Source: Vitrella brassicaformis CCMP3155
Lineage: Eukaryota > Protista > Chromerida
Length of the DNA stretch: 64,000 nt
NCBI GenBank assembly: GCA_001179505.1
Contig: CDMY01000236.1
Coordinates: 1 to 64,000, forward strand
Reading direction: 5' to 3'
The first letter of the stretch is position 1. Every line of letters starts with the position of its first letter. This document shows positions 1-39,363 of the stretch, in pieces. The notes below the pieces were generated by a model that was given only the letters and a program-made list of their open reading frames with translations, was not told the origin of the DNA and searched no databases. The translations under genes and the position numbers were made by a program.

Positions 1-990
1 CTGCCCAGCACCGCCCGGATGGCCCCCACCTCAATCGGATCACCGAGACTCGTTCCCGTACCGTGCGTCTCGATATAAGACACAGCAGCGGGACTGACGC
101 CTCCCTGCGTCAGAGCTCGAGACAAAACTTCTTGCTGGGCGGGCCCATTGGGAGCAGTGAGGCTGGCGCTTCGGCCGTCATGGTTGACAGCGCCGCCCAG
201 CACCGTTCCGAAAGACACGAGGGACTCGTTTGCGGCGAAGGTCGACGGGTGACAGAAGAGCACGGCGCCACATCCCTCCCCACGTGCGAATCCGTCAGCA
301 CTTTTGTCGAATGTCTTGCATCTCGAGTCGCGGGAGAGCATGCGGGCTTTGGAGAAGGCAATGAATGGCATAGGAGAGAGCATCAGGTTGACGCCGCCGA
401 CCAGCGCAGCAGGGCATGCCTGGGCGGTGATGTTCTTGAGGGCGACTTCCATGGCCACGAGGGACGAGGAGCACGCCGTGTCGACAGTCAGACTGGGGCC
501 GCGCAGGCCAAAGACGTACGACAGGCGATTCGACACGATGCTGTTGGCTGAGCCAGTGCCGACATAGGCACTGCGGCCACGGTCGAGTGACTGCACCAGA
601 GCCCCCCAGTCATTGTTGCAGCAGCCGATGAAGACGCCCACTTGCTGGCCGGGCAGCGACTCTGCCCTCAGGCCAGCGACGTACATGGCCTCATAGCCGA
701 CCTCAAGCATGACGCGCTGCTGGGGGTCCATGGTGAGGATCTCTGCCGGGCCGATCTTGAAGAAGGTGTTGTCGAACATGTCGGCCGAGTCCATGAAGCC
801 TCCCTCACGAGCATAGCTGCAGCCGGTGGCGTCGGGGTCGGCCATGTCCAGGACGGCCTCCATGTTCCACCGTGACAGGGGCACTTCACCCATGCAATCT
901 GTCCGCCTCATCATCATCTCCCAGAAGCCAGACGGGCTGCTCACTCCCCCAGGATAGCGACAGGCCACACCCACCACCACTGCCTTCTCA
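1..990 (-). other. PKS module 4 ketosynthase (truncated by window edge)
   Basis: VVGVACRYPGG, MDPQQRVMLEV, LTVDTACSSSLVA, YIETHGTGTSLGDPIEVGAI. Confidence 0.92.
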
Positions 991-3900
991 CGCCCAGACA
1001 CACCATCCACTCCCGTTCTCTCGGGGCCTGGCGGTGCTGCGCCGAACAGCATCGCCTCGCCGTCCTCTGCCTCGGCTGTGGCGTCACCCGTGGAGGTGTC
1101 CATCTGCTGTACGATGAAGTCGATAATTGCGCGCAAAGTGGGGTAGTCGAAGAGGGTGGTGGCAGGCAGCTTGATACCGAGCCGTGCGGATAGGTCGTTG
1201 CGGAACTCGATAGCGCCCAAGGAGTCGATGCCGAGCTCTTGGAGGGGCGATTCGAGAGGCGGTGCAGTGACGTCCACCACTCCGCGCCCCAACGCTTCAG
1301 ACGCCGACTCGACAACCACAGACTGGATGTACGACCGGAGTTGGGAGGAACTCAAGCCACTGAGAATCGCCTTTGTAAGTCGTGGTGTCTGATCTGCCGT
1401 GCGGGGCGTCCTCTCCGCCGATTGACTGGTTCGCTGCACCCTCAAGACATGTCGGGACCCTGGCAGAGGCGACTCGCTCAAAAAGGACACGTGCAGCGCT
1501 TCAGTCAGGAAGCTGGCGTCCACTTCAAACAGCGAGGCATCCCACCGAACGAGAGACGATCCACGAGAGGGCTTGGCCTTGAGGGTGCGGCTGAGTGCTT
1601 CGACCAGAGGCAACGAGGGAACAGTGTGGGGTTCTCCGGCTGTCTTGACCAATGCCTCGAGGGTGACGACGGTCAACTCAGGAGCTGGATCTTGCGCCAG
1701 TACGATTTCCACCAAGCATCGGGCCCGGGTCAGCTGCTGTTCCTTCTGCTCGTCTTCTGCCGATAGCGCACTCACGACGCACAGACACCGAGCGATGGCT
1801 GGCCTCTCCGTCTCGGCCAAGGCTTCAGGCCACGACATCTCTCCACATCGGATGGTGCGATGCTCTCCATCATATCTCAGCCTCATGGTGGTCAAGCGGA
1901 TGCCGTCAGACAGGTCAGTCGCCCATGCGGCCAGATCGGCAGGAGGTGACCACGACGCGACGACAAGACTCTCGCATCCCTGCTGGATGAGGGCCTGAGC
2001 TGCTGGCAGGGCAACGGGCTCCACGTCACCGCACACCAAGACGCACTGATCCCTCAGGGAGGCCACACAACTTGTGGATGGCATGGGCCTCGGCACTGTG
2101 GTGATGTGGCTGTCAGCGGCGTTGCGGACGACGAAGACAGTCTGGTGAAAGAAGATGCCTTTGTTGGGGGTGATGTACTCGAGTACGAGTCCCGTGTCAT
2201 CGAAGGCCCTTTGCCAGCCAGACTGTGGCAGGAGGGGACCGTCGTGCCGGAGGTCGGAGTCGGTGAACCGCCACCACCCCTCTAGCAACCCGAAGGTCGT
2301 CTGGTAGAACCAGATGTGCAGCGTCAACTCGGATATGATCAGAATGCCACCGGGCTTCAGCGACGCCTTGAGGTTGCGGAGCGTCGCCCGAAGGTCCTGG
2401 GTTGCGTGCAGCACGTTGACGGCAATGGCCATGTCGAAGGCGCCTTGGCCAAACCCGCTGTGACGAGGGTCCTTCTCAATGTTGAAGATGGAGTACTCGA
2501 CGTTAGGGTAGTTGGCGAAGCGCTTGGCGGCATTGCGCAAGAAGTACTCGCCCAAATCAGTGAAGAAGTACTTTGTGCGGCTGGGATCCAGCCTGGGCAG
2601 GATGCGGGAGGTCGTGGCACCAGTGCCAGCCCCCACCTCACATATGTGCATTCGCTGTGCGCCCCTCGACAGCTCATGCCTGCACACGAGGTCAGCGATC
2701 TCCATGACGAGGCCGTTGCTGAACTGTGATGGGATGGCGTCTTGGTAGATAGCAGTGGTAAGGTCCATGGACCCCTCAGGGAACATAAGCTCCACTGCAT
2801 CGACGCCACCCTTCAAGGCTTCAACCAGGTAAGGAGCACATGCCTGCGCGACGCTCGCCTCCGCCGCCACCTCCTCGACTAAGCTGTTGAGTGGCGAAGT
2901 GCTGAGACTCACGGGCGGACCACCGTCAACGTCTGATGCGTCCAGCATGTCGACGAGGCTTCGGTAGAGCCTGAGGTGGTGTGGATGGACCACGTCAGCT
3001 TCCCGGACTGCATCGATTGCCGACTGGCAGTATGCACGGCACACTCTCTCCATTTGCGTAAATCCATCGGACCATCGCTGCGCCTCATCCGACTCCATGG
3101 CACCTTTGATAAAGGCAGACAGATGCTCACTCAGACACAGGGAAGCCGACTCATCCAGAGCACCAAAGGCGGGAGAAAGACCACGACCAAGTCCAACGAC
3201 AACGATCTCATCACTGTCCGGTGCTCCCCTGGTGCTCTCGAGCGCAGCTGACAGGCGGCTGGCGTCTTCCGCGTCCACTTGGCGTATCGTTAAACGAGCA
3301 TCTGCCGTGTCGCTGTCAAGCAGCTTGCGGAGCCCATGTGTGTCTGCAGCTGCTTGCCGTGCGAGACCCCTCCTTAAGGCTTCAAGACGGCCCACGATTG
3401 GTGGCCAGTTGGTGGTCTCTGGTGTCGTCTCGGCAGGGTCGATGCGCTTGAGAAGGCGTGCTTCCGTCACAGCCGTGTTGGCCCTGATGTCTTGTTGTGC
3501 GGCATCCTCAAGCCATCCCGCCACTTTGTCGCCCACCTTGAGGTGTGAGACGCCATGTCCGACCTCGGCAACAACGCCGCCACATGCCAAGGGACCGTCT
3601 TGTGCTTGTCCGGAGGGTGGAAGGGCTAGGGCATGGACGCACAGTTTCACTTGGCAGGGTGACGGTGACAGGGCTGGTGTGCTGTGGTCTGGCACCGGAT
3701 CCATTCCCCACTGGACGCGCACTGCCTTGCTCACGGCCGCCTTTGTGTCCGACAGAAGCACGGCTGGGGACAGGTCGACGGACACAGGGATGTCCTTGAG
3801 TGAACGATACTCACGCGGCGCCAACAGAGTGCCGTCCCGATAGGCCCACGCCGCATCAGACCCAGCGGGCCCATCTTGCGCCTTGGATGTCATCATGCCG

Positions 3901-6900
3901 ATGACCGTGCGAGTGGCTGAGGCGGTCGCTTCGAGGGATGGTGGGGCTCCGATGAGATCCAGGGAACGAACGGTGCACTTGGTTGGGTCTTCAGCACTCT
4001 CGAGGCTCTTGAAGGTCAGCAAGGAGTCGTAGGACGGCTCATCACCGTCAGGCCTGTCGACCAACACCAGAACCCCCACAGGCGTGTCGACACACGCAGA
4101 GCTGAGCACTTCGATGGAAGTCCGGAGGTCTTCGCTCTGCAGCTGTGCAGCAAGTTGCGGCTGCGTGCAACACCGATGTACCAGGACAACCCCTCCCGGT
4201 GTGTTAGGGAGACGCCTCGCTGCGTCTGCAAGTGCCTCCACGCTCGAACACACCTCCACGTGGGGCCCGCAGAGAGCTTCATGGAGCTCTGCAGCCCCGC
4301 CAGTCAGGAGAATCGCCACACTCTCCAAAGCCGTCTGCATGGCCTCGCCGCTAATGTCGCAATCGTCCAGGGGGACCCAGCTCTCCTCAAACAGAGTGGT
4401 GCGAGACGAGGAAGGCGCCCCAGGTGCCTTGGACCTGGCCCCTTTGACTTTGACGCGGTCGTAGAAAGGCGTGTGGGCGATCCAGCGGAGGTACGTCTCG
4501 AACCGAATGGGCTGGCAGCAGACGACGTCAACGGTGGATATGTGAGTCTGGACGGCCCACAGGCTGCGGAGGCCGAGGTCGTTGGTGACGCCCCCCCATC
4601 CCATCCTATCGAGCTGGTACTGCCCCACTATCTGGGCCGCCTTGCCCTGCTCTGTCCACACGCCCCACTGAATGCTGGTGGCTGCCAGGCCTAGCGATCG
4701 TCGGTATGTGGTCAGACCGTCCAGGCAGGCGTTGGCAGCCGCATGGTTGGACTGGCCGAAGTTGCCCAGGATCCCAGCAACCGACGAAAAGACCAGGAAC
4801 GTGTCGGCCTGCACCTCCCTCTCAATCAGTAGGTCGTGGAGCGCCCAGGCGCTCTGCACTTTGGGGCCGTAGACATCTGCTATGGTCTCGAGCGTCTGAC
4901 TGCCGATGGCTGCGTCGCTCAATGTGCCGGCAGCATGAATGATCGACTTGGGCACCAGACCCTCCGATTGGACTTGCATGAGGAGGGCGCGGCACTCCTC
5001 AATGGAGCTCACGTCACACTTGGCCGGCCGCAGAGTGATGGACGAGCCCTCCGTGGCTTGGGCGCTCTGCATAATGGTCGTGAGGCGGTGCCATTCCTTG
5101 CTCTCCTTCATCTCCTGAGTAGGCTGGCCTCGTCGCGACACGAGGATGATGTTCCTGGCGCCGTGCTCAATCAGCCAGGCAGCGACCACCAGACCCAGGC
5201 CGCCAAGGCCGCCAGTGATGACATATGCATAGCGGGAAGAAGAAATAGTCTCCGACTGTCCCTCTATGGCCTCATACATGGGAGCGGATGGCATGGTGAG
5301 GACAATCTTGCCGATGTGGACCGCCCGCTGCATGAAGGTGAAGGCCGCCGACCCGCCTTGCCGCTCGTCGCTGAGATCGAATGAGTGGATGGGAGGAGGT
5401 GTGAGCTGGTCCGTCTGGATCATGGAGTTGATGCGGTTCAGCATGCCGCGGAACCACACTGGGTCTTCACTGATCATCATGTCGAGTGCAACAGCTTCGT
5501 AGTTGACGTCTGCCCGCTCTTGAGCCATCTTGTCCCGGCTCCAGATGCCTCGCTTTCCGATCTCAAGGAACCATCCACCCGGACGGATCAGCGCCAGAGA
5601 GAAGGTGATGAACTGACCGCTGAGGCAGTTCAAGACGGCGTCCAGCCGCCCCTCGTCTCCCAGGAACGATTGCATGTCCGTCTGAAATCGTTGCGGGTCT
5701 CGTGAGCTTGTGATATACTGGACCCCCAGGTGTCGCAGGAGGGTCCTCTTGCGGTCGCTGCCTGCCGTGGCGTAGACGATGGCTCCTGCCCTGATGCAGT
5801 GCTGCACGGCAGTCAAGCCGACTCCGCCAGTCGCAGCGTGGATCAGCACCCGGTGGCCAGCCTTGACGTGGGCGACGTCTCGAAGGCAGACCTCCACAGT
5901 GCCGATGATGATGGGCAGCCCAGCAGCTGCAGCGAAGGATATGTTGGGCGGCTTGAGGGCGACTGGTCCAGCGGCTCCGGTGGTGACGTACGTCTTGAGG
6001 CACCCACTGATGACACCGTACACCTCATCCCCCACTTTGAAGGAGGTGGTTTTATCGCCGGCAATGCGTGTGACCGTCCCACTGCACTCTCCACCGGCAT
6101 CAACCGACACTCTTTCAGCAGACGCACAGGCGCCGAGCACCAGCAGGAGGTCGCGAAAGTTGAGACCCGCGGCCCTCACGCGAATCTCCATCTCTCCGGG
6201 GGCCAGCTCTCTCCGCTCACCAGGCTCCTGAGGACGGAGCTTCATCATGCTCTTGAGCGATCCTCGGCCGGACAGCTCCAGCTCAACGGGACCTCGCGCA
6301 ACCAGGGAGCTCTTGATCAGTCGAAGCGCATAGACGACGTCGGCTCGCACGGCCAGTTCCGGCTCCCCATGGGCTGTGAGCCGCGAGGAGTTGGCCGCAA
6401 ACGTCATGAGCTGGTCTTGCCAGGTCGCCGCGCCTGCTCTGTCAAGGTCCACAGTGACAAGGTGAGTAGCGTCTTGGCGCTCGAGCCTGGCGCTTCGCAG
6501 CATGCCCCAGATACCCGCATGGACGGGTCGACACTCCATACTGGCGTCACGGGCCCGCACCCTGTGAATGCTCGACGTGAAGAACACGGCAGTTGTCTCG
6601 TCTGGCGGCCGCGAATCGGCAAGGAGTGCCGCCACCACTTGCATGGCCCCGAACAGAGTGTGCTGCGCATCGACCTCGCAGCTCAGCCCAAGCAGGCACA
6701 TGATCGTATCCCCTCGTCCCTCCGCCAGCAAGGTGGCGACATCCTTCTTGATACCAGCTGGGGCCGACCCATCGCACCACACAACACCGGCAGCTGGGGC
6801 TTTCAGGCCCCTCTCAACGGCAGCCACGAGGGCCTCCTGGGATCGCTCGGCCACAATGATCGGCCGCAGGTCTTGCTCAGTCGTCGCATCCGCCTCCAAT

Positions 6901-9900
6901 GTGAGATGCGGGATCCACCTGGTCTCCCAAAAGTCACCGTCCATTTGCACGATCGACACACTCTTGCTCCCGAGCGACAGCTCCCTCAGACGAAGCTTCT
7001 CGATGGATGCCACCTCCATACCTACGAATCAAGTGGGCACACGGACGCAGGCAGACAGACAGACAGACATGATCACGTGACGGCGTCCGAATGGCACACC
7101 GGCCCGTGTGTGCGTACCCGTAGATCCGTCCGTTGACTCGTATATGGAGATGTCGACAGTGATAGTGGACGATGTGGTCTCGACGACCTTAACGTGCGAC
7201 CACAGCTCCCTGCCCTGCAGCACCGTCCCGGACCGAATGCGCGCCCGTCCAATGGTGAAGGGCACCATAGCCTTGGTTGAATCGCCGTTGCGGTCCACAA
7301 CACATGCTGCAGCCTGCAGCGCCCCATCCAGCACCCTCGGTGACGAGTGGAGGAATCGCTCGTAGGACGTCAGTGAGTGGTCCCCCTTGATGAGCCCTAT
7401 AGCTTCTGACTTGCCCCTGTAGGCCTCCCGGATCGTCTGGTAGGTCGGCCCGTAGCAAAGACCGGCATCCCGCAGCCGGCGATACATGTCATCCGTCTTG
7501 ACCACACGGTCGCAGCGAGAGCGGATCTCAGCGATGTTGGTGGTCTCGCTGGGCATGGAGACCCCCATCGCCTTGGCCCAAATGCGGCCAGTCACGTGCA
7601 CCAGCTGCTCGTGATCGTCTGACCCCTTTCGGCTGCCGATCCTGAACCCAGCATTGTCGAGCAGCGTGCATGCTATCGTCTGCGGGCTGTCAGATCCGCT
7701 GCTGGCGAGGACGAGGGGCGCCTCGAAGCCGACATCCTCCATGGTGACAATATATGACGACCGCATGGCTGCCTTTGGGCCCTTTGGTGCTGCCCTCAGG
7801 TGCTGGTCAAGTGCTGCACTCATGGCGATCTCCAGGTGTCCCGCAGCGGGCCAGATAAGCTGGTTGGCCACGACGTGATCCGCCACCAGCTGCCTCACAG
7901 GGTTGTCGATCCGTGACTCGAACGACACCACCGAGTCGTCCTCCTTTCCAGCATCCTTGTTGAGCCTCCTGGCGATGAGTGGATGCCGCAGCTCGGGCCA
8001 CACGAACGACTGGCGGTGGGTGAAGAGCTCGCTGCCACTGTGCACCGTCACATGGGTCTGGCGGGCTGCATCGACCTCCTTGACCAACTCGACAAAGCCC
8101 GTGGAGCCCTCCTCTGCAGAGCTGCATCCTACCCACCGCTTGGATGCCGACGCCGGGCCTGTCAGGCACTGCTTGGCCATGGTGAGCAAGACAGGCTTGG
8201 GGCCGATCTCAACGAATATGCTGCCGCCCGAGCGTTCCGCTGCTTGGATAGCGCTGGCGAAGCGGACGGGTCTGAGGATGTGTGAGGCCCAGTAGTTGCC
8301 GTTGAGGAGGGTGCTCGTGGCCATTTCCCCGGTCACCGTCGAGTAGAAGTGGCAGTGGGGCGGGCCGAACGAAGTGTCCTCGACGATGCGGCCGAATGGC
8401 TCCTTGATGCCCATCATGAGGTTCGAGTGGAAGGCATGGGACACTGTCAGGTACTTGCAGGCTCGGGCAACTCCCAGGATCTCCATGGCCTGCCTGACAG
8501 CCTCGTCTCGTCCCGACAGCACCACGCTCCGCGGACCATTGACGGCCGCGATGCTCACCAGCTCAGCAGTGGACCGTGGGAGCTGGCCAAGCGCCGCCTC
8601 CACCTCTTCCTCACTTTTACGGATGGCAACCATCACGCCACCGTCACGAGGCAAGTCACTCATGAGCCGTGACCGCTCGGCGACGAGGCGAAGGGCCCCC
8701 TCGAGCGTCAGAACTCCCGCAGTGACTGCAGCGACGTATTCGCCGAGGCTGTGGCCAATGACTGCGTCGGGCGTGATGCCGTGTGCCTTCCAGAGCTCTG
8801 CCATGGCATACTCGTACGTGAAGAGGGCCGGCTGGGCGTAGCGGGTGTCATCGACGTCGGCGCTGCCGTCGAAGATAATCTCCTTGATCGAGTAGCCCTC
8901 GTACGCCTTGAGGTACACATCACAGCGGTCGAATGCCTGCCGGAAGGCATCCTCAGCCTCGTATAGCGTCTTGCCCATGCCGGCGCTCTGCGACCCCTGG
9001 CCAGTAAAGAGGAAGACGACCCCTGCCTGCTGCTGACGAGGGGGGGCCTCCTGGGAGCTGCGCTGCTTCTCCACCAGTGTCGACAATGCATCAGCGTCAC
9101 CCTCCGAGCAGCACACCGATGCGTTGGTACCTCCAAAGCCGAAGGAGCTCACTGTAGCCGTGAGCGCCCCCTCAGCTGAGAGGGCGATGGGCTGAGTGGG
9201 AAAGATGACAGGGAAGTCTCCCGGCTCAATGTGGTGATTGAGCCTCTCCAGGTGGAGATTGCCCGGCGCTTGACGGTTCATGAGCACCAGGAGGATCTTG
9301 ATGAGGCCCGAGATGCCTGCTGCACCCTCGAGGTGTCCGATGTTGGTCTTGAGGGCTCCGAGGACCAGAGGCGACTCGACGCTCCTGTCGCTTCCGTAGA
9401 CGGCCATGATGGAGTTGAACTCTATGGGGTCACCAAGGGAGGTGCCCGTGCCGTGACACTCCACCATCGACACATCCGACGGCACCTTGTTAGCGTAGGC
9501 CAGGGCCGTCTCGAGGCACCGCTGTTGGGCCGGGCCGTTGGGGGCCGTCAAGCTGACGCTCCTCCCATCCTGGTTGACGGCACTGCCTTGCACGGTGGCG
9601 AAGACCTTGAGGTCTCCTTGCCTCGCCTTGTCCATCGTATGCAGCACCACCACACCGCACCCCTCCCCCCTCGCGTACCCATCGGCACTGTCGTCGAATG
9701 TGCGGCACCGGCCGTGCGGTGAGAGCATGCGGGCCTTGGAGAAGAGGATGAAGGGCAGCGGCGACGTCATGACCTGCACACCTCCGACCAATGCGCCGTC
9801 GCAGCGTCCGTCGCGGAGGGAGTGGAATGCGATGTCGATGGCGACGAGGGATGAGGAGCAGGCCGTGTCGACGCTGATGCTGGGGCCCTTGAGCCCTAGC

Positions 9901-12900
9901 ACAAATGAAATGCGATTGGATATGATGGATGATGCGATGGCTGTGCCCGTGTAGGGGGTCGGGACGCTCTCTTCTCGGCTGGTCAGCAGGGCCCAGTCGT
10001 TGGTGCAGCACCCCACGAACACACCCATGTCGGTGCCTCGCACGTGCTTCAGAGTCAGACCGGCGCAGTCCAGGGCACTGGCTGAGGTCTCGAGGATAAT
10101 CCGCTGCTCTGGATTCATTATGGTGGCCTCTTGCGGCGTAATGCCGAAGAAGGAGGCGTCGAAGAGATCGATGTGGTCCATGAAGCCTCCCTCTTTGACG
10201 TAGTAGGACCGTCCATTCAACTCGACGTTGGGGTCGTAGAGGCCCTCAACATCCCAGCGCATCTGAGGCATCTCAACAATGCAGTCCCTCTTGCCCATCA
10301 TCATGTCCCAGAAGGCCAGTGGGCCGTCCACACCGCCGGGCAGACGACAGGACAAGCCAACGACAGCGATGCTTCGCGCCCTCCGTAGGACGGTCCGGGG
10401 CGTGGCCTCGATGATGGCCTCCATCCTCGTCTTGGGCTCTCGCTCATCGCCTAGGGTGTCGGTCACGTAGGTGATGATGTCTTCGAGGGTCGGGTAGTCG
10501 AACAGGGCTGTGGCGGGGAGGCTGATGCCCACCCTCCTGGCCAAACTGTTGCGGAACTCGACAGCCCCCAAGGAGTCGATGCCCAGGTCCGAAAAGGGCA
10601 CATCCATGGGCTGCTTGCCGTCAACGCCCAACACCTCACGGGCAGTCTCAAGCGTCAGGTGCTCAACCATCTCCCGACGCCTGGCACCACTCAAGCTGCG
10701 CAGCCAGTTCTGCACGTCACGGCTTTGATGGGCTGCTTTTGCACCATCAAACTGCACAGCCTTGACGCGGGAGAAGAGGTTGTCGTAGTGCTGGCCCGAG
10801 AAGGTGCTGAGAAGGAGAGTCGTGTCAAGTGGCTGGGCCGTCACGACACCGCCGGCAGGGTGGGCGAGGAGGGAATCGAGCAGACGGAGGGCCAGCTCGT
10901 TGGAGATGGGCGGGATGCCCGCGGCCTTCATCTTGTCCATACTGCCCGCCACTGTTGCCATGCCTTGATCCGACCACGGACCCCACTGGATGCTCACCGA
11001 AGGACGCTGAACGGACCAACACGACACACACGAGACAGACAGACAGACAGACAGGCATGAGCTTCAGGCGAATGACTAACACACCCGTCACGGTCCTGCT
11101 CACTCACCTCTGACGATTGTCGATAGTCGACTAGTGCGTCCACACAGGCATTAGCAGCACTGTAGTTGCTCTGGCCTACGTTGCCCAACAGGCTCGTGAT
11201 TGACGAGAAAGCCACAAAGCGTTCGAAAGGCGACTTCAGCTGTTGTTCCACGCGGTGGATGTTCCACGCTGCCATAGCCTTGCCGACGTATGTGGTGCGC
11301 ATGGTGTCGGGTGTCTGCTGGGCGAGTGGGGCGTCCCTGAGCGCGCCGGCGGCGTGGAAGACGTGTGAGATCCGAAGGCCTTCCTGCTCCAGGCCCGTCA
11401 TGACCTCAAGCACACTGGTCTCGATTCCGACGTCGCAACTCATGGCCCTCACAGTTGTCCTGGACTGCTGCAGCCGTGTCCATCGGTCCATCGCCGACTC
11501 GTCGGGCGCACCTCGCCGTGAGAGGAGAAGGATGTGGTGCGCGCCTTGCTCGACCAGCCACTCGGCCACCACCAGGCCCAGCGCGCCTGTGCCGCCCGTG
11601 ATGACGTGCACGCCCCGCTGGCCCACCACAGATGCATCCGTGGCCGTGTCGACGGGGCTGGGGATGTTGACGATGACCTTGCCGATGTGCTGGGCTTGCT
11701 GCATGAAGCGGAATGCCGCTGTGAGGCCGGTGGTCTTGTCGCTGCTGTAGATGTCGAAGTTGCAGAGAGGGATTGGCTGGATGCGCTGCCCCTCTGCCAG
11801 AGTGCTGATCTCGTCCAGGAGCTGGCCAAACCACTGGGGGCGGTCCCCGATCATGTGGTCAAGGGCCACTACCGCGTACTGCACGTCGGGCCGCACACTC
11901 TCCATGTGCTCCTCGGTCCAGATGCCTCGTTTGCCCAGCTCGACGAAGCGGCCGTTGTGCTCTAAGAACTCCAGTGAGGCCGGGATGTAGTCGTCGATGA
12001 GGGAGTTGAGCACCACGGTGGCGAGACCTCCACTGGCAGTGAGGCTCTGCATCTCCTGCTTGAACTGTGAAGCGTCACGTGACGTTGCGATGAATGCGAT
12101 GCCCATCTCCCGAAGGAAGTCTTGCTTCTTGGCCGATCCCGCTGTGGCAATCACGTCCGCCCCCACTCGTCTGCAGTACTGGATGGCGGCGAGCCCCACT
12201 CCACCAGTGGCCGCATGAATCAACACACGGTCGCCCCGGACCACCTTAGCCGCGTCACGCAAAGAATACTCGACCGTGGCGAAGACGCTGGGCAGCGAGG
12301 CGGCAGCGCTGAAGGACCAGCCGGACGGCATGCGAGCCAGAGTCCACTCGCTCGTCGTCGCGTAGGTCTTGAGGCACCCAGGGGAGACGCCGTAGACGCT
12401 GTCACCCACCTTGAACCGCCCGTCTGTGTGGTGGGCGGTGCTGACCCGGACCACCGTCCCCGAACAGTCGCCCCCGGGTGGTCCAGGGTCACCGGGATAC
12501 AGCCCCATGACATTGAGGACGTCACGGAAGTTCAGACCGATGGCACGGATCCGAACCTCCACTTGGTCAGCCGACAGGTCGGCGGCGCGGGCCTCTTGTG
12601 GCATCGGCTGGAGGAAGAGGTTGGAGATGGCCCCTCGCTCGGACATGACCACCTGGATAGGGCCCCTCTGCCGGATCCTGCTCGCCCGTATCCTCGGGAT
12701 GAGAGTGCTGCCCTGCCGCCCACACACTTCCATCTCGTCTGACTGCTGAAGCAGGTCCGGCAGGGATTCTCTCGTCAGCTCATCGACGTCGACACATGCG
12801 ATGCTGTTCGACACGCCCGTTTCCATCTCACACTCGAGGCGAGCAGACCGCGCGAGGCCCCACAAGCCGCCATGGACAGGCAAGCCGTCGAAGCTCGTCG

Positions 12901-15900
12901 CGGCGCCGATCTGTTTGCGGGTCAGCAGCACGACGCGGGGCATCTGACGCTGAGCCCTGTGCACAGTGAGGGCGGTCTGCAGGAGCTTGACAGCTCCACA
13001 GATAACTGCAATGGGGTCAGTGGCATAGGCGTCGTTGACGGCTGCAGCGTAGACGATCTGAGATGCCGTATGCGCCGACAGCAGTGATTCAGAAACCTCA
13101 TCCGCAGCCGCAAATGTAGTTCCCTCTCCCAGTGCCCCCGTGAAGATGCGTTGCTGGTCATCTGACGCACCGACCACCAGCGTGTCAGCGGCAGTGGCCT
13201 TGTCGGTCTCCCCGCCTGACGGAACCCATTCGATCTCCCACAGGGAGGGCAGCGCTGCCTCTGTCTTGTTTGGCCTTCTTGAGAAGTCGACCTCCCTCAG
13301 CTGGAGGCCGCTCATGTGCAGGGCAAGATGGCCGCTTGCCGTCCTCAGGGTGACGTCCACCTGCGCCCCTGTCCCCTCTCGCGTTTTGAGGAAGAGATGA
13401 GCCCAGAGCTCTGTCACACCCACGCACGACCGCGGCCGTCTCCCATACGTCATCCTCCGAACGCCCACAGGCACCATGGCCTTGGTGAACGGTGCCCCTT
13501 CCTGTGTGGCCTGCTGCAGCAGCATGGCTGCCCCGTGCATGGCGCCGTCCACCAGGGCAGGGTGGTAGCCGAACCCCTTCTCGAAGTCCTGGAGCTTGGC
13601 CACGCTGACACGCACAAGGGCCTCACCCGCTCCCATCCGGACGCTCTGCAGCGTCTGGAATCGGGGGCCGTACTCCAGGCCGATCTTTTTGAGAGATGCG
13701 TAGAGGTCCTCCGATGCGGCAGATGATCCCTCGAGCGGTTCGGGGAGCCGCTTCTGCAGCGTTGCCAGCCAGTCTTCCTCATCGATCGCCGGGCTGCCCG
13801 CCGTCGGTGTGTGGCCCTCCCAGGGGATCGCGCGCGCCGTCACGTGTGTGTGGTGTGGTTGGGGCTGGTCGCCGCTGTCACCGCTCTCCTGACTCCACAG
13901 AGTGGTCACTCCTTCTTCGTCAATGGTGCACCCGAACACAGGCCGTTGGTCGCTTGCTGTGTCGATTGTCATGGGGACCTCAAAGCTGACGTCTTCGCAG
14001 ACGAGCTCCTGGTTCTCCACCGGCACATTCTTCTTCTGCCACTGAAGCATGGCAATGCCCAGAGCGTCGAGATAGGCAGCGGCCGGGACGACGGCCATGC
14101 CTTGCACAACATGGTCACCGAAGAGGGCCAGGGCGCTGCGGGAGAGGGTGCGGGTCGACTCCAGCTCATCCCCCTCCGATGCGTCCTTGCCGACGAGGGG
14201 ATGCGGCACGTCCACCCAGGGAAATGCACGCCGGGTGAATGTCACAGGGGGCCGCACGTCGCTGCCGTCCGACCCCTCCAGGATCACGTGCGCATTGGTG
14301 CCGCCGAAGCCGAAAGAGGAGACACCTCCGTATATGGCCCCGTTGTTGTCTGCCAGCCTCACAGGCTCCGAGGGGAAGACTATGGGGACGTCGCTGACTG
14401 CGATGTGGGGGTTGAGGGCCGAGAAGTGGAGGTTGGGCGGGGCGGTCTTGTTGCGCAACACAAGAATGACCTTGAGCAGGCCGGCGATGCCCGCCGCCCC
14501 CTCCAAGTGGCCGATGTTGGTCTTGAGTGCGCCCATGACGAGTGGTCTGTGTGAGGTCCTGCCCCTGCCCAGCACCGCCCGGATGGCCCCCACCTCAATC
14601 GGATCACCGAGACTCGTTCCCGTACCGTGCGTCTCGATGTAGCCGAGCGCATCATACGATATGCCTGAATAAAGCCAGCGACAACACACAGCCAGCAGAA
14701 GGGAAAGAGGTGTGATCGACCAGCATGGCATGCCTCATTCATTCATCTCTCTGTCTTCTGTCTGACTGCCTGACTGACTGACAGACTGACTGACTGACNN
14801 NNNNNNNNNNNNNNNNNNNNNNNNNNNNNNNNNNNNNNNNNNNNNNNNNNNNNNNNNNNNNNNNNNNNNNNNNNNNNNNNNNNNNNNNNNNNNNNNNNNN
14901 NNNNNNNNNNNNNNNNNNNNNNNNNNNNNNNNNNNNNNNNNNNNNNNNNNNNNNNNNNNNNNNNNNNNNNNNNNNNNNNNNNNNNNNNNNNNNNNNNNNN
15001 NNNNNNNNNNNNNNNNNNNNNNNNNNNNNNNNNNNNNNNNNNNNNNNNNNNNNNNNNNNNNNNNNNNNNNNNNNNNNNNNNNNNNNNNNNNNNNNNNNGA
15101 GCCTGACGCCCAGCTCTGAGGGAAGGAGGAAGGGAGGGAGGGACACAAGAGAGAGAGAGAAGAAGAGAGAGAGACGATGAGCATCCATTCATGCAAGGAG
15201 TCGTTGGTGCAGGCTTACTGTTGGACAAGGCGTTGCGGAACTCGACGGCTCCCAGCGAGTCGATGCCCAGCTCCTGCAACGGCGCGTCGAGAGATGGTAT
15301 CTCCGATGCTCCCAGCACTTCCAAGGCCGCCTGCGTCACTGTCTCGTTGACAAATGTTCGGATCTCTTCTTTCGTCAGTCCTTGCAGGTTGGGACCGTCG
15401 CTTGTGCGATTCGCACTTGTGGAGACGCCAAGGGCGACGTTGGAGAAGAATGGGGGTGTGGCAAGGCCATCATGCCGTGCTGAGACGAAGACCGGCCAGT
15501 GCACAGCTTGACAAGCCACAACTGGCGTCAGATTGCTCCGGAGGACGTCACCGAGGACTCGCAGCCCAAGATCATTCGTGACACCGGAGAGCCCCACCTT
15601 TCTGAGACGTTTGCTAAGGCCGGCAGCCATTCCCTGGTCCGTCCAGGGGCCCCACTGGATGGATACGCCGCTCAAGCCGCGGCAACGACGATGTACTGCG
15701 AGGCCATCCAAGCAAGCGTTGGCCGCCGCGTAATTGGTTTGTCCGAAGTTGCCCCACAAGGACGCGACGGAAGAGAACAAGACGAACGCATCGAGCCCGT
15801 CGTCTGCGTGCGCGGCAGCTCCTCTCCTCGCCATCATGGTGTGATGGAGGTGCCACGCTCCGTCAACCTTGGGCTTGAAGACGGCTTCCACGCCTTCCCT

Positions 15901-18900
15901 GGTCTGGCTCTCTAGAGTGGCGTCAACGAGCACTCCAGCAGCATGAATGACGGCCTTGACGGGAGGCAGTCCCTCCTCGTCCAGTTCCCTCACAAGCCTT
16001 TGGCACTCGGAAATGTCGCCCACGTCACAAGCGAAAGGCACAACCCCGCCAACAGCCACCAGTCTCTTCCACAGAGGACTCCGCTCCGAGTCAGTACTTG
16101 GTTTGCCCTTTCGAGAGGCGAGCACCATCGTCTTGGCGCCCTCAGAAACAAGCCAGTTGGCAACAACGAGACCGAGGCCCCCGAGGCCTCCTGTCACAAG
16201 GAAGGTGCCCTGCTGAGGCTCCCCAAAGGAGGTCGGAACCTTTAGGACGACTTTCCCCAAGTGTGCGGCTCGCTGCATGAAGCGGAAGGCTGCCAGTCCG
16301 CCTGTTCTGTGATCTTCGCTCGTCATGTCGAAGGAATGGAAGGGCGGAGATGTGATGAAGCCTTCCTCAATGAGGGAATGTATCCGCCGAAGCATCCCTC
16401 CCAGCCATTGCGGGTCGCTCTCCACCATGTGGTCGATAGCGATGGCCTCGTAAGTCACATCGGGACGACAGCGACGCATCTGGGCGGGACTGTAGATGCC
16501 GCGCTTCCCCAGCTCCATGAACCGGCCACCGTGGCCAAGCAGCCGAAGCGACGCCTCGAGCATCGCACCAGGCAGCGAGTTGAGGACAACGTCCACCTTG
16601 CTGCCATCCAGGAATGTGTCCATGTCACTCTCGAAAACGGCGGCGTCGCGTGAGCTCGTGACAAACTCTACCCCAAGGGAGTGGACGAAAGCTCTCTTGT
16701 GAGAACTTCCGACTGTTCCGTACACAGTCGCTCCGACTTGTCTGCAGAACTGGACGGCGGCGAATCCCACGCCTCCGGATGCGGCATGGATGAGCACGCG
16801 ATCTCCGCTCCGCACTTGAGCGATATCACGCAGTGCCACCTCGACGGTGATACTGACAGCAGGAATGCTGGCTGCCGCGGTGAAATCGAGGCCAGCAGGC
16901 TTCCGCACGAGGAAGTCGCAGGGCGTCTTGACGAAAGTTTGGAAGCAGCCCGGCGCAATGCCAAAGACGTCATCTCCGACCTTGAGTGTTGCCTCTGTGT
17001 CGGAGCCCAGTGTCACCACAGTTCCCGAAACGTCCAGTCCAGGTGCTCCTGAATACACATCACACATGAATCAGGACAGACAGATGATGAGGGAATGAGG
17101 GAGGCGTTTTGCGTATTTCGAGTGGCCATTTCGTGATTACCTGGATTTCCCGGGTAGAGACCCATGACGTTGATCACATCTCGGAAGTTCAAGGCGGCGG
17201 CTCTGACGCGAAGAATGCACTCGTTGGGAAGAAGGGCACTGGTATCGCTCGTGGTAAGAAATGGGTAGGGACTGGGGCGCAGCTTCAGGTTCGCGATGGC
17301 CCCGCGCTCGGTCATGTGTAGCTCCCGTGCGCCTCCCACAGCCAATGCACTCCGCGCCAGACGAGCTCCGAGGATCTCGCCGCCTCGAAGAGCCATCTCT
17401 GGCTCCAGGTGCTCTTCCATCGCAACTGCCGGCTCCAGCTGCTCCACGACGGACAGGGTAGAGGATGGATCCAGGTCGATACAAGAGATTGGCACTGCCG
17501 CTCCAATCAGGGGCTCAAGCTCAACGCGGGCCGTCCTTGCCGCGCCCCAGATGGCGCTTTGTGACACCGCCGCAGCTGTTGCCAGCCCCTGCTGACCCAA
17601 GGGTACTGACCCGCGGGAAAGGAGGTACAAGGGCGGCAGGCGACCTCGCGATGATCCTTCCCCTCCGGAGGGTAGGGGAGAGCCTCGTGCCAATTTCCCG
17701 TAGGCCTGCACGACAATCAGCGCCTCGCAAGCCAGCTCCGTGCTCTCCACAACTTCAGCAAGGGCTCCGAGGTACACGACGGCGCTCCAGATGTCTCGCT
17801 GCAGCAAATGGCCCAGCCCCTCGGCGCCACGACTCCTCAATTCCTCCGACGTGACAGACTCAGGCACACGCCCTTTGTCAGCCCAGGCCCTTGCGGTGTC
17901 GTGTAGACTACCTGCCGTGCCGCCCAGCAGGAGGATGCTCAACGGTCCAGTATGGTGAATGTCGTCCACCTCGGGCAGCTGGAGATTGTCCAGTTTGACC
18001 CAGTCGACATCCCATAGCAGCTCGCGGGGGATCTTGACAGCATCCACCTGCGTATCCACCTGACGAGCCGACACCTGGTCGAGGTGCGCGATGCACCGCT
18101 TGTCGCTGTCGAAGAGGTGTACAGAGTAGGTGACGTGTGCGGGCTCTGTCCCAGACGCGGACTCTGAACACACAACAGGCAGATCAGGCAGGTGTTCTCT
18201 CGCCATCCGTGCAGCCTCCTTACGTCGCAGCGAGTCCAATATGATGTGTCCCCAGACAGAGTCACTTTCGCGGAGCGGTGACATCGCTCTTATCGAGATG
18301 GACTCCACAGCATAGGGCACCAGAGGGTTGCGAAGCTTCGGCACCTCGCCTTTTCCGTCCAGCACGAAGAGTGCAGCTGCCGACTGGAGGGCTCCGTCGA
18401 GGATGGCAGGGTGCACTCCGAACCCCTGCTCGAATTCCTCCCAGGCCCCTGTGCCGCCCGCTCGTAGCTCGACCAGGACCTCACCGTAAGAGGACTCGCC
18501 ACCGGATGACTCGCCAGGCAATACGTACACTTGGCGTACAGTCTGGAATCGGGGGCCATAATTCAGTCCAGCACCAGCCAGGCACCCGTAAAGAACCGAT
18601 GGCTCTACACGTCTGACGTCTGCCGCTTCTGCCTGCTCTAACAGGTCCTTCAGGCTGACGGTGCCGATCTCGAGTCTCTCGACGTGACGCAGGACACTTC
18701 GCGCGTGTACTCGCGCGTCACCGTCGCCCTCGTCTTCGTCTGATTCGTCCATGTGAGACGATATCGCGAGCTCGATGTCCTGCTGCGAGCCGGACTGTCC
18801 ACTCACTTCAAGCGTTGGCAACTCGCTCGAAGCCGAAAGGATAAGGGGCTGCTGGAACTCGACTCCATCGAGCAGCATGACTCCTGCCTGTGCCAGAGCA

Positions 18901-19665
18901 GCGGTTGCCGATGCCGTGAAGATTTCGATGAAGCCCGCTGCCGGCATGATGGGGCGCCCGGATACGGCATGGTCTTCGAGTAGTTGACCGACATCGCGTC
19001 TGAGACGTCCGACTGCTCGCCATCTGCTCTTGCCCATGTTGTGGACACGGAGTGTGAAGGGGTTGAGTGGCGGCTTCCAAGGGAATGAAGAGTGCCCCCA
19101 TGTCGGCAGGGGAACAGCAGGCAGTTGGCCGCCATCTGCTTTCACTTCCATGACGATGTGGGCGTTGGCGCCACCGAAGCCAAAGGAGCTGACGCCGCCT
19201 ATGAAGGTAGAGCTTTGATCATCCGACGGGACCAGGGGCGTGGCTTCACAGGGGTAGATGGCGTGGAAATCCTCATCCATGTCAATGTGGGGGTTTAGCA
19301 CCCTCAGGTGCAGGTTGGGCGTCGACACACCGTGGTGTAGCGTCAGCAGCAGCTTGATGAACCCCGATATGCCGGATGAACCTTCCAGATGGCCGATGTT
19401 GGTCTTGAGTGCGCCCATGACGAGTGGTCTGTGTGAGGTCCTGCCCCTGCCCAGCACCGCCCGGATGGCCCCCACCTCAATCGGATCACCGAGACTCGTT
19501 CCCGTACCGTGCGTCTCGATGTAGCCGAGCGCATCATACGATATGCCTGAATAAAGCCAGCGACAACACACAGCCAGCAGAAGGGAAAGAGGTGTGATCG
19601 ACCAGCATGGCATGCCTCATTCATTCATCTCTCTGTCTTCTGTCTGACTGCCTGACTGACTGACA

Positions 19666-19696
<31 letters not shown>

Positions 19697-22600
19697 CTGC
19701 ATCCTCGATGGCCTCAGCGAGAACTTGCTCCTGCGCAGGGCCGCTTGGAGCAGTGAGGCTAGCAGCGCGGCCACCATGGTTCACTGCTGAGCCGCGAATC
19801 CGCGCCAGTGGCTGTGCGTCGGTTACTCCTTCACTGTCGCTCTGTGCTGCCGCCTTGAGTACGATGGCAGCGCACCCTTCACCTCTCACATATCCATCAG
19901 CCGTGGCGTCGAAGGTCTTGCACCTCGCGTCCCTCGCCATCATGCCGGCACGGCAGAAGGCGGCCGTCACCTTGGGCGACATCATGAGGTTGACGCCCGA
20001 GGCCACTGCAGCCGAGCAGATGCCCTTCTGCAGGTACTTGACGGCGACGTCGACGGCCACGAGGGAGGACGAGCAGGCCGTGTCGAGTGTGAGGCTGGGG
20101 CCCTGGATGCCGAGCAAGTAGGACGATCGGTTGGCGATGATGGATGGCGCATTGGAGGTGGCCGAGTAGCTGCTGACGGAAGCAGCTGTTGCGTCCATGA
20201 TGTAGGACCACTCGTTGCAGCAGCACCCCACAAAGACACCGATGCGCTGCCTCACCAGAGCTGCCCGCTCGAAGCCCGCCTCGTGCAGCGCGCTGTAGCT
20301 GACCTCCAGCAGGAGACGCTGCTGTGGGTCCATGGTCCTCGCCTCGCTCTCGGCGATCTTAAAGAAGGACGAGTCGAAGAGCTCTGCGTCCCGAATGAAG
20401 CCTCCCTCCTTGATATGCATCTTGGTCTCGCCCCTCGCCTCGGGATTGGGGTCGTACCACTCGTCCGCATCCCACCGCGTCGGCGGCACCTCCACAATCG
20501 CATCATGACCTCCCACCACCATGCGCCACATGTCGCCAAGGCTCTCCACGTCACCCGGCAGTCGACACGCAGCGCCCATCACAAGCACCGATCCAGCTGA
20601 TGCATCCGGTGCATCGGAGACCCTCTGCAGGGTCCTCGATGACGACAGAAATGCCGACGAGTTGGTCATGAGTTCCACCAGATGGTCGCAGATGGCGCTG
20701 AGGGTGGGGTGGTTGAAGATGAGCGTCGTTTCCAGGTTGGGCAGGTTCAGACGGCTTGCAACCAGATCAGTGAACTCCACGGCGCCGATCGAGTCCACGC
20801 CCAGCTCAAGCAAGGAGGCGTCCATCTCAGGCACACGACCGTCGCCGAGAACGGCCTCAGCGCTTTCAATCAGCACTCTCAGCACCTCCTCGCGATCGAC
20901 GGCTGTCGGGGGCTGCTGCTGCTGGGGTGGGGAGTCTGGGGGCCGCGGGGACTTGACCTCTGCGATGGAAGGGGTCGGCAGTCGCGTGGACGTGTCCACA
21001 GGAGCAGGTGGGCCCACGACCGCCCGAGGCTCCTTGACGCGAGATGCTTGTGCCTCGGATGACGTGAGGCGTGCCACCTCGCTCATGTTGACTGTAAGCA
21101 GGACGCCTGCCTGCTCGCCGCTCTCGATCAGGCTCTTGGTCTTCTGTCGCTGTATCTTGCCACTGGTGGTCTTGAGGATGCTCCTGGGCTTGAGCAGAGA
21201 CACACGGTGGACAGGGATGCCCAGTTTGGACGTGACGCTGCCGCCGATCTGCTGTGCGAGTGCCTTGAGCACCTCCTCCTCACAGACCCGGCGATCTTGG
21301 CCCAGACCCAGACGCCGCCCCAGCCATCCCAAAGAGGTGCGCTGCGGCCTGGAGGGGTCGGCCATGCAGCTGTCGACACGCTCGGCGAGCTTCTCGGGCT
21401 TGATCTCGACGGCAACGCCGATCGTTTCGTTGCCGTCGGCCTCCATGGCGAATGCGGCTGTGGAGCCTGGTCGGACCACATCGATGTGTGACTCGATCTC
21501 CTCCTCCACATCCTGCAACCAGCGACACGACACACAGAAGGCAAGGCAACACAGCACAGCACACACACGTGACACACAGGTCAGTCAGTCAGTCAGTCAT
21601 GTGAAGGATGGTCGTGGGTAGCTGGCTAGGTAGGTATGCACCTGTGGGTAGTAGTTGCGTCCCCTGATGACGATCATGTCTTTGATTCTGCCGGCGATGA
21701 AGAGCTCCCCCTGATACATGAAGCCCCTGTCGCCGGTCTTCATGAAGGAGAGGCCCTCGGTCTCCTCGTCAAGCTCCGGTGAGCCGTCACCATCCCTCCT
21801 CGGCGCCAGCTGCGCATGGAAGATCTCTTGGGTGACCGCCTGCTGCTCGAAGTATCCCATGGCGGTGCTGCCAGACTTGACCCACACCTCGCCCACACGG
21901 CAGTCGGGCAAGGGACGTCTCGTCTCGGGATCTACTATCACAACTGATAGACACAACACAACACACGACACGACCCAGCCACACAGACAGAAGGAAAGAA
22001 GCGATGAGAGCCAGTCCGTGGTGTCTGTCTGTCCCTCCCCCTGTCTGTCTGTCTCTCTGTCTCTCTGTGTCTGTGGTGGTGGTGTGGGTAGATACCAGCG
22101 ACTCCTGCGTATGGGACGCCGCAGCCGACGAGCCGCCTGAAGCCGTCTGACTCGTCCTGGCTGCTCTTGCCATCCTCCCGCAACCCCCGCCACTGGTCGC
22201 GAACCTCAATGATGCCCTGATTGACACACACATCCAGTACGCGTAATCATCATTATGAGCGGTGAGTCAAGCGATCACGCCCCCCGCCCCCCCCTGTCTG
22301 CCTACCGATTCTGTCATTCTGTCGATGTTGACTTCCAGGACCAGCGGCAGGGTCGTCGAGGTCTTGCGGCCCGTCACAAACAGAGTGTTCTCAGCGAGGC
22401 CGTACGCCGGCAGAAAAGCACTGCGGCGGAGACCTCGAGGCTCAAATTTCTGCCGTATGAATGAATGACACACACACGCAGTGAGATGAATGAACCAACA
22501 GTGCGACGCGATGGGACGGTGAGTGGCTGACTTACCTTGATGAATCGTTCGACAGTGGTGTATCTGATGGGCTCAGCGCCACAAAGGAAGCCCACGACCT

Positions 22601-37645: not shown

Positions 37646-39363
37646 ATGTATCCAAAGACCGACAAGGCACGGAGTCCGACTCATCGAGGTCATCCCGGCC
37701 CTGGCGTCGCTGATGAGAATCTTGGCACATATCTCCCGCCACGAATGGTAAGAGGCATAGGAACAAGGCGAGCGTCCCGCATGATCGCGTTGCTCTCTCT
37801 CCTTTGTCTTTGAATCAAGGTGTTGGGGGATGAGCTGATGGATGAGATCCTCCAAGAGGACTGCCCGCACCTCGCGCAGCTGGACAGCCAAAGCCTGAGG
37901 GACTACCAGCACCGCACCATAGCGCCACATTCAATGGCGGAGCACAAGCAAACCATGGCGCACGGCGAGACACGACACCCGCAGACATCTTCAGCAGCTG
38001 AGGCCGCTCTCGCCTATCCTCGCAAAGGCGGTGCATTTGATGACATCAAGGTGACAACTGTTGCCACTGAGGGTGGTCTGAAGACATGCACTGACCACGA
38101 GGATGTCGGCTCAGGGTATCCGTACCGCGAGCCGCTGCACACGAGCACACAGCGAGGCAGAGCCAAAGGGACCAACCCGCCCGACCGGCCCGGCTCACTC
38201 TGGGGATTCTTCTCTGCACCCAGGAAGGACGAGAAGATGACGGACATCAGGCGGGGAGCGAAGACTGAAGATACGAAAGACACGAAGAAACCCGACAGGG
38301 CGATGAAAGAGCCCCAGGCGGCCACGAAGGAGGTGCATGCGAAGAAGCTGCAGACAGAGAGGAGCATGAAAGCCAAAGAGTCGTCAAAGAAGTCCATTGG
38401 CGCTGAGAAGAAGGCGCGTCCGGTGGAGATGGAGCAGGTGTTGGAGCAGGTGCTGATGAATGTTTGGGTGGACGCCGATGAGGATGTCGAGCGATTTCTT
38501 CTCGACGCCCAGGCACTGGGGGCAACAGGCCAGCGAGTGCGAGACACCGAGTGCTATCACTGGACGACTGGTTCGGATTGGGCCAAAGGAAGGGAGACGG
38601 TGGAGAAAAAGAGCACCCAGCTGAGACACATGGAAAGGGACTTGCAGACATCAGGCGGAGCAAGCGAAGTGGTGGGCAATGCATGCGCGACGCTCCTTAC
38701 TACTCATTGTGCTTCTCTATTGATTACTTGCCTGTATGTCTCTCTCTGTCTGCCTGCAGCAAGGCGGCAGTGGTGTGTTTCGTCGCAAGATCCCCACAGC
38801 CAACCCAGCCGTCCTCACCTACGCCACCACCTACCCTCCCCCACACGCCCTTCCCCCGGTGCGCGTCCCATGGGCGCATGAGCCTCTCGACGAGCGCGAT
38901 GTGATGCACCTGCCGCGCTTCACGGCTGCCCAGGAGCTACACACCCGGCAGCTGACGTCTTCGGTTACCCACAGCCCCACCCANNNNNNNNNNNNNNNNN
39001 NNNNNNNNNNNNNNNNNNNNNNNNNNNNNNNNNNNNNNNNNNNNNNNNNNNNNNNNNNNNNNNNNNNNNNNNNNNNNNNNNNNNNNNNNNNNNNNNNNNN
39101 NNNNNNNNNNNNNNNNNNNNNNNNNNNNNNNNNNNNNNNNNNNNNNNNNNNNNNNNNNNNNNNNNNNNNNNNNNNNNNNNNNNNNNNNNNNNNNNNNNNN
39201 NNNNNNNNNNNNNNNNNNNNNNNNNNNNNNNNNNNNNNNNNNNNNNNNNNNNNNNNNNNNNNNNNNNNNNNNNNNNNNNNNNNAGAACGGTGAGACGGGC
39301 AGCAAGGAAGAGGGTCGCACGACGGATAGTTGGGTTGTGCAGTTGGCCGAGTTCATGTCATAA
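37646..39363 (+). CDS. Hypothetical Lys-rich protein (donor of the kinase tail), spans a gap
   Basis: Exons MYPKTDK...LPPRM | VLGDELMDEILQEDC... | QGGSGVFRRK...[gap]...WVVQLAEFMS*; homologous to 32195-33380 in inverted orientation. Confidence 0.65.
38984..39283. other. Assembly gap (300 N)
   Basis: N run. Confidence 0.95.

Follow-up and report, generated by a model that had tools for sequence, protein, structure and literature searches.

What place does a C-methyltransferase (cMT) occupy when it lies behind a complete reductive loop of a polyketide synthase (PKS) module, ahead of the only carrier protein? The question is raised by one large gene of Vitrella brassicaformis CCMP3155 that makes up, in long open stretches on the minus strand, the left 24 kb of the window (the whole stretch of DNA analysed, positions 1 to 64,000 of contig CDMY01000236.1, 64,000 nucleotides). 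One module of this gene can be written as KS-AT(malonyl)-DH-psiKR-ER-KR, followed by a second cassette psiKR'-ER'-cMT-KR' and a single acyl carrier protein (ACP). Here KS, AT, DH, ER and KR are the ketosynthase, acyltransferase, dehydratase, enoylreductase and ketoreductase, and psiKR is the KR's structural half. We consider it probable that the second cassette is dead apart from a live cMT, that its position is between the active KR and the ACP, and that it is of the type found in a clade of metagenomic synthases represented by protein P0007.

Residue numbers (aa) refer to the translation of 7028->3 on the minus strand. The exon starts at 7021 (-) and is free of stops for 2,340 codons, up to the window edge; a preliminary description of the locus had frame and coordinates right, 7021 being the first exon base after a 96-nt intron. 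Pfam places ADH_N at aa 277-345, ADH_zinc_N at aa 402-577, KR at aa 601-793, Methyltransf_12 at aa 1464-1563 and PP-binding at aa 1905-1972. The first reductive loop consists of psiKR1, the structural half of the active KR (6219..6971, -; aa 20-270; FWETRWIP start; E 1.7e-9 and 3.7e-6 against psiKR profiles by hhalign), the intact ER1 (5298..6200, -; aa 277-577; HAATGGVG; Pfam ADH_N, ADH_zinc_N and ADH_zinc_N_2) and the intact catalytic half KR1 (4650..5228, -; aa 601-793; TGGLGGLG and GQSNHAAAN; Pfam KR 1.3e-52, hhalign 3e-49). In GQSNHAAAN (4731-4757) a His stands where many KRs, including those of modules 1 and 2, carry the Tyr of YAAAN. The same His occurs in 12 of the 13 KRs matched in the P0007 clade and in 21 of the 38 matched bacterial KRs in the sample, so it is a common variant. 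The only ACP of the module (1113..1316, -; aa 1905-1972; GIDSLG; Pfam PP-binding 3.5e-13) follows the KR at a distance of 1,111 residues, the additional cassette with its linker accounting for about 1,030 of them. Between the active KR and aa 1905 Pfam identified no ACP; the second loop precedes the ACP as first described. The post-KR tail and linker (4407..4649, -; aa 794-874) contained no ACP, KS or DH remnant, nor any other Pfam match at E≤10. With the threshold as lax as E 10, the only Pfam hit over aa 800-1460 and 1610-1910 was a match of 22 residues to ADH_N (E 0.012). The motifs quoted in the preliminary description were recovered: TLFEESWVP at aa 878-886, VRSLDL at 1020-1025, AYRDGTLLAPR at 1062-1072, QVKLCVHALAL at 1126-1136, GGVVAEVGHGVSHLKVGDKV at 1150-1169 and CVLVCGDVEPVALPAAQALIQQGC at 1662-1685.

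The cMT is intact (2109..3068, -; aa 1321-1640). Its core matches Pfam Methyltransf_12 (1.4e-18), and the domain matches CurJ (5THY, E 1.9e-54), DisA (2.9e-37) and AprA MT2 (1.8e-29). The motif I (E/DxGxGxG) that binds S-adenosylmethionine (SAM) is kept as EVGAGTG. The catalytic dyad of CurJ has its aligned counterparts, at the same 26-residue spacing, in the His of NVLHAT and the Glu of ISELT; in CurJ these are reportedly H280 and E306 (Skiba et al. 2016). The cMT is taken to be active.

The arrangement around the cMT is found intact elsewhere. P0007 (3,128 aa), from a JGI metagenome contig that also bears a GLTP-domain gene, reads KS-DH-psiKR-ER-cMT-KR-ACP-TE, and its KR catalytic half begins ~30 residues past the cMT. 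A search seeded with this region of P0007 led to a clade of AT-less multimodular PKSs in ENA and JGI assemblies. By domain map, psiKR-cMT-KR-ACP occurs in about two dozen modules of the clade; psiKR-ER-cMT-KR-ACP with a complete ER is intact, by Pfam, in P0007 and in the first module of P0122. In profile-profile comparison the clade segment before the cMT is a psiKR (E 9.5e-15) and the one after it a KR catalytic half (1.4e-57), which means that the cMT of this clade is inserted within the KR, either at the ER insertion point or shortly after it. By hhalign the Vitrella cassette is collinear with P0007/P0122 (6-1071 vs 2-1177); the single large gap falls on the Rossmann subdomain of the ER. 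A scan of GTDB genomes for close relatives of the P0007 cMT-KR, by an insensitive method, found none. The architecture search called for at the outset had two outcomes: the psiKR-(ER)-cMT-KR cassette is described in no paper found, and strings such as ER-MT-KR or DH-ER-cMT-KR are absent from the literature searched, but the order exists intact in the unannotated metagenomic proteins P0007 and P0122.

Before the cMT of Vitrella, the strongest signal is that of an N-terminal GroES-like ER lobe (ER'; 3504..3692, -; aa 1113-1175), the presence of which is statistically supported. By hhalign the E value was 2e-6 for the whole stretch and 2e-8 for aa 1105-1179 alone; the Pfam ADH_N match lies here, and GVVAEVGHGVSHLKVGDKV within the lobe gave sub-threshold matches to alcohol dehydrogenases (ADH) and quinone oxidoreductases. 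In an AlphaFold2 (AF2) model built on an alignment of psiKR-ER segments, the beta-rich lobe corresponding to it (model residues 290-390) reached a confidence score (pLDDT) of 79-97. A Rossmann cofactor motif AxxGGVG was not found in aa 1113-1320, the Rossmann subdomain of the ER falls in a ~130-aa gap of the best collinear hhalign path, and the 145 residues past the lobe (aa 1176-1320; 3069..3503, -) score no better than shuffled sequence in profile comparison. ER' is therefore a relic and not an ER. The stretch of 145 residues has no NADPH motif and is of uncertain ancestry, being the remainder of the ER relic and/or the start of the cMT lid. Since P0007 and P0122 have a complete ER and then the cMT, this is the normal site of a cMT in the clade, and the earlier proposal that the cMT had replaced most of a second ER finds no support in that form; ER' would have lost ~100-130 residues separately from the placement of the cMT. 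A decayed DH before the cMT, as in the canonical DH-cMT order, was rejected: the stretch has the ER N-lobe signature and no HxxxGxxxxP, and its model resembles KR/ER folds and not a double hotdog.

Upstream of the ER relic lies the putative second structural KR half, psiKR' (3699..4406, -; aa 875-1110), which runs from TLFEESWVP through VRSLDL to AYRDGTLLAPR. It is identified solely by the order of its motifs, by language-model features and by a model guided by an alignment. In a MAFFT alignment against 50 psiKR-ER segments the stretch was collinear: the psiKR landmarks (W..W.P start, central strands, VRSLDL for V.VDLD, AWAYRDGTLLAPR for E.A.R....RL) appear in order, the ER motifs follow and the NFRDVL loop is deleted. 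MAFFT alignments of the whole cassette misplaced the stretch before the cMT. The ESM features before the cMT fall in SpnB_Rossmann and ADH_N clusters with a score of 0.89. The AF2 model contains a beta/alpha domain (model residues 66-248, pLDDT 64-83), with values below 50 outside the two domains. Foldseek ranked PKS modifying regions best for this model (5bp4 at 2e-8, then MAS, 8g7w, 3slk and LovB), and Foldseek and VIA matched the first-half model to PKS modifying regions and KR structural halves (5bp4, 9nju, 7cpx). These features would fit a truncated Rossmann fold without cofactor motif, set between the W..W.P start and the E.A.R....RL end and directly before the ER. In the PDB sequence search the first half gave merely sub-threshold ADH motif matches.

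After the cMT follows a stretch, KR' (1449..2066, -; aa 1655-1860), that we favour, short of proof, as a former KR catalytic half from which the NADPH motif and most catalytic residues are gone. The BLASTP alignment of the cMT continues directly into the catalytic KR half of P0007, with CVLVCGDVEPVALPAAQALIQQGCESLVVASWS of the query aligned to LISGGLGGLGLLTVRLLVKRGHQQFVLASRSG of P0007. By hhalign, CVLVCGDVEPVA...VVASWSP pairs with LISGGLGGLG...VLASRSG at a posterior of 0.8-0.9 over beta1-alphaA-beta2; high posterior is limited to the first 45 aa of the stretch. CGDVEPVA stands for GGLGGLG, ASWSP for SRSG and TAGEPH for AGQxxH. The NADPH motif GGxGxxG, the Arg after strand 2 and the catalytic Ser/Tyr/Asn are missing from aa 1655-1860, where CGDVEPVA, ASWSP and TLEALVKTAGEPHTVPS occupy the aligned places. 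With low confidence, TAGEPH lines up with AGQMPH of P0007 and a Trp with the WG motif. The ESM Atlas features of the stretch are in KR clusters only, with a score of 0.87; the PDB sequence search with it gave no match.

The same stretch can also be read in the canonical cis-AT order. The part after the cMT would then be a structural psiKR (DH-cMT-psiKR-KR) whose catalytic half was deleted, and the part before the cMT a separate psiKR-ER relic. BLASTP alignments with the bacterial cis-AT proteins P0014 and P0030 run CVLVCGD... onto the first strand and helix of their post-cMT psiKR, the length (~240 aa plus linker) suits either KR half, and bacterial psiKR profiles match with E 2e-3. However, catalytic-half profiles score better (5e-4, 1.4e-3 and 6e-3, vs 2e-3, 0.058 and 0.44 for psiKR profiles), the Pfam KR family is found in 10/10 top ESM clusters, and the SRSG and AGQxxH remnants are in register. 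The canonical order moreover requires two unrelated orphan psiKR halves in place of one matched pair, and we regard it as unlikely.

The preliminary description had instead taken the locus for a tandemly doubled loop: the module's own psiKR-ER-KR would have been duplicated and a cMT later inserted in the second ER, replacing most of it. The loops do adjoin in the same order, and BLASTP gives a weak match (28% over 103 aa, E 0.05) of the ER relic to the ER next to it. Yet over ~50 columns the relic is 25% identical to the ER of its own module, as compared with 38% for module 2, 30% for P0007 and 40-47% for bacterial ERs. Being no closer to its own ER than to others, it does not indicate a recent tandem duplication. 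As other proteins have psiKR-ER-cMT-KR intact, and in them a complete ER precedes the cMT, an insertion into the ER need not be assumed either. We therefore hold duplication to be quite improbable. Arrival of the cassette as a whole, and not by duplication of the adjacent loop, probably accounts for the arrangement, which is close to the imported-unit alternative of the first description. Two modules could have fused, with ACP-KS-DH lost between them, or the cassette could have been inserted.

The locus itself appears sound. There is no N-gap in 1110-7021, and independent contigs of three public DNA runs, which may be the assembly's own source, span 1300-7200 at 100% identity. The junction from the KR to the second loop is bridged by the contig piece 3822-4909, which speaks against a mis-assembly. 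By codon-usage log-likelihood ratio (LLR), frame 0 is favoured throughout (psiKR' 0.187, psiKR1 0.185, KR' 0.151). The signal is weakest, at 0.085, in aa 1176-1320, the rest of ER'; it is near 0 in the linker to the ACP (1317..1448, -; aa 1861-1904), where no family was matched. Three short contigs from a sediment metatranscriptome, with identities of 95-99%, map to 3055-3269, 5545-5716 and 5778-5928, which is weak evidence at best; they hint at a close environmental relative, possibly one that transcribes the gene. An artefact or a dead gene (mis-assembly of two modules, unspliced in-frame introns or a pseudogene) might be suspected from the absence of RNA evidence, from a codon signal that falls to about zero in aa 921-980, 1101-1160 and 1201-1260 and from three N-gaps elsewhere in the window, but it is very improbable in view of the 2,340 stop-free codons, a frame 0 that is best in every sub-region, DNA contigs bridging all junctions and a metatranscriptome contig (215 nt, 3 differences) that is unspliced on 3055-3269.

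Several points weigh against the reading of a dead cassette of the P0007 type around a live cMT. No RNA evidence for the organism was found; the sequencing runs in which the locus is present are of DNA, with contigs of up to 225 kb. By profile methods psiKR' alone is inseparable from shuffled sequence: hhalign gives E 0.15-0.63, as compared with 1.7e-9 for the real psiKR1, and hmmsearch scores are no better than those of shuffles. Real psiKR-ER sequences made up the alignment that guided the AF2 model, which is not independent of it, and single-sequence AF2 of the whole cassette was uninformative (pLDDT 36 even over the cMT). KR' scores only slightly better against catalytic-half than against psiKR profiles. 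The cMT is sister to the P0007 clade in a quick tree, where the grouping is weak (SH-aLRT 89) and the branch long (1.32). Finally, no relatives of the stretch before the cMT were found from which purifying selection could be gauged. A word-index search with aa 830-1270 and a scan of JGI metagenomes returned none, and full HMMER against 1.84 billion representatives returned no credible one. This library also lacks the window's own protein, so the blank says nothing on Vitrella paralogues or Chromera orthologues. The sole HMMER match, P0121, is a bacterial Ig-like protein rich in repeats; its score is made up of nine weak repeats, and it was treated as spurious.

A course of reaction can be proposed. 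After condensation with malonate, the cMT would methylate the alpha-carbon of the beta-ketoacyl-ACP with SAM, and the upstream KR, DH and ER would then reduce the intermediate to a 2-methyl-branched saturated unit. A fully reduced unit with an alpha-methyl group is the likely product. Because the cMT of the P0007 clade is an insertion inside the KR fold, psiKR' and KR' may have persisted as a joint frame in which the cMT is held and linked to the ACP. The second, dead scaffold would plausibly serve the cMT as a chassis; this part of the earlier idea of a repurposed chassis is retained, and the duplicated-loop origin attached to it is not supported. The supposed undescribed route to methyl-branched lipids was not borne out either, as SAM-dependent alpha-methylation is standard chemistry. 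The alpha-methylation step is known; the cassette type that delivers it, here cut down to dead KR and ER parts around a live cMT, was found in no paper.

More tentatively, and with slightly less than even confidence, we propose that psiKR-(ER)-cMT-KR, with the cMT in the KR fold at the ER insertion site, is a third class of PKS C-methylation cassette that is mobile as a unit. It would have been placed behind a module's own reductive domains both in Vitrella, where it is stripped to a pseudo-KR/pseudo-ER chassis with only the cMT live, and in the metagenomic protein P0133, where it is intact. If this is true, a placement inside the KR stands beside the two others, before the psiKR (cis-AT, fungal, FAS) and after the KR (trans-AT). 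Standard annotation does not see it because the psiKR is not called. The module would be a clear case of inactive enzyme domains retained as a frame for a live domain, which bears on the recombination of modules in megasynthases, and it suggests a self-contained 'methylation cartridge' for engineering. A further prediction is that a chromerid, free-living and closely related to the apicomplexan parasites, makes a methyl-branched lipid that is fully reduced.

The remainder of the gene surrounds the module as follows. The intron before the exon (7022..7117, -; GT..AG, 96 nt) encloses an in-frame TGA at 7029-7031, and the open stretches on both sides share one frame. The upstream exon (7118..11063, -) carries, by Pfam and motifs, the previous ACP and the KS, AT and DH of the same module. 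The AT has GHSLG and HAFH, a malonyl signature. The DH has HVVANQLIWP and D...Q; in HVVANQLIWP (10040-10070 region; residues 1060-1075 of the 7032-11063 piece) an Asn is at the Gly position of HxxxGxxxxP. Joints at 6790/6829->7048 were read as repeats in view of their 21-22-nt sides and non-canonical ends. At 7048-7069, in the GTCT-rich intron, many DNA contigs stop or diverge. The end of the DH, upstream of this site, seems to occur at other places in the genome too, next to different flanks and probably within paralogous modules. On the other side of the ACP the KS of the next module (3..986, -; from aa 2015; Pfam ketoacyl-synt 7e-81) runs past the window edge.

Further upstream the order by Pfam is AMP-ligase, ACP-KS, DH (no AT), ER-KR-ACP, KS(C-terminal part)-DH-ER-KR and then ACP-KS-AT-DH. 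In the first two extension modules (17016-21584 and 10997-14734) the KS leads directly to the DH without an AT, which is present only in the third module (8139-9023); the two AT-less pieces share a start at KS_C profile position 39. Two stretches of the same frame are divided by an in-frame stop at 19617-19619, which is probably part of another short intron at a conserved site. The window contains 300-N assembly gaps at 14799-15098, 38984-39283 and 44240-44539. The first is inside the PKS and hides most of the second KS, between a truncated ACP (end ~15223) and the resumption of the KS near residue 290 (14680); the KS of the second module is thus incomplete in the assembly and not in the gene.

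Several known systems come close to this module. In trans-AT modules of the type KS-(DH)-KR-MT-ACP, the MT directly follows the KR. The Vitrella MT likewise lies between an active KR and the ACP, and the neighbouring modules are AT-less, but it is flanked by psiKR/ER and KR relics of its own. Dead domains are also kept as structural parts of other megasynthases, such as the inactive MT of animal fatty acid synthase (FAS) and the inactive ER of the fungal HR-PKS LovB. The order DH+MT+KRs+ER+KRc has been described for Dictyostelium, animal FAS and LovB (PMC12828403). The first-half model matches structures of this group (5bp4, 9nju, 7cpx). In animal FAS, LovB and Dictyostelium Pks16, however, the MT precedes KRs and either MT or ER is dead, whereas here the MT is live and an extra KR and ER are dead. 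In modules of the order KS-AT-DH-MT-(ER)-KR-ACP the MT is before the psiKR, and the MT-KR linker is the structural KR half (PMC2613160). CurJ-type cis-AT modules, with an embedded cMT in the order KS-AT-DH-cMT-psiKR-(ER)-KR-ACP, share with the Vitrella module the cMT family, the SAM motif, the His-Glu dyad, a malonyl-type AT and the expected chemistry of alpha-methylation of the beta-ketoacyl-ACP followed by reduction. They differ in that their cMT comes before the psiKR, while here a psiKR and an ER relic come before it and a KR catalytic-half relic after it, and in that the Vitrella module has an additional complete set of reductive domains.

Among algal synthases, MT domains are missing from most trans-AT PKSs (Shelest et al., PMC4661987); in two Vitrella synthases and one of Chromera they were recorded without further comment (Tomcala et al., PMC7464705). 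Further parallels are metagenomic. In P0133 (residues 384-2369) one module reads KS-flavoprotein-KR-psiKR-cMT-KR-ACPx3. As in Vitrella, a KR is followed by psiKR-cMT-KR with no ACP or KS between, and with the same W...W..P start; in contrast, the glycine motif for NADPH is retained in both KRs of P0133, and the module has neither an ER nor a relic of one but does include a flavin-dependent oxidoreductase domain. P0007 and P0122 have the same domain order over the full 1,076 residues, with a cMT that is weakly sister to that of Vitrella. There the cassette is the sole reductive loop of its module with ER and KR motifs intact, whereas in Vitrella it is a second loop in which ~100-130 ER residues are missing and the KR motifs are lost.

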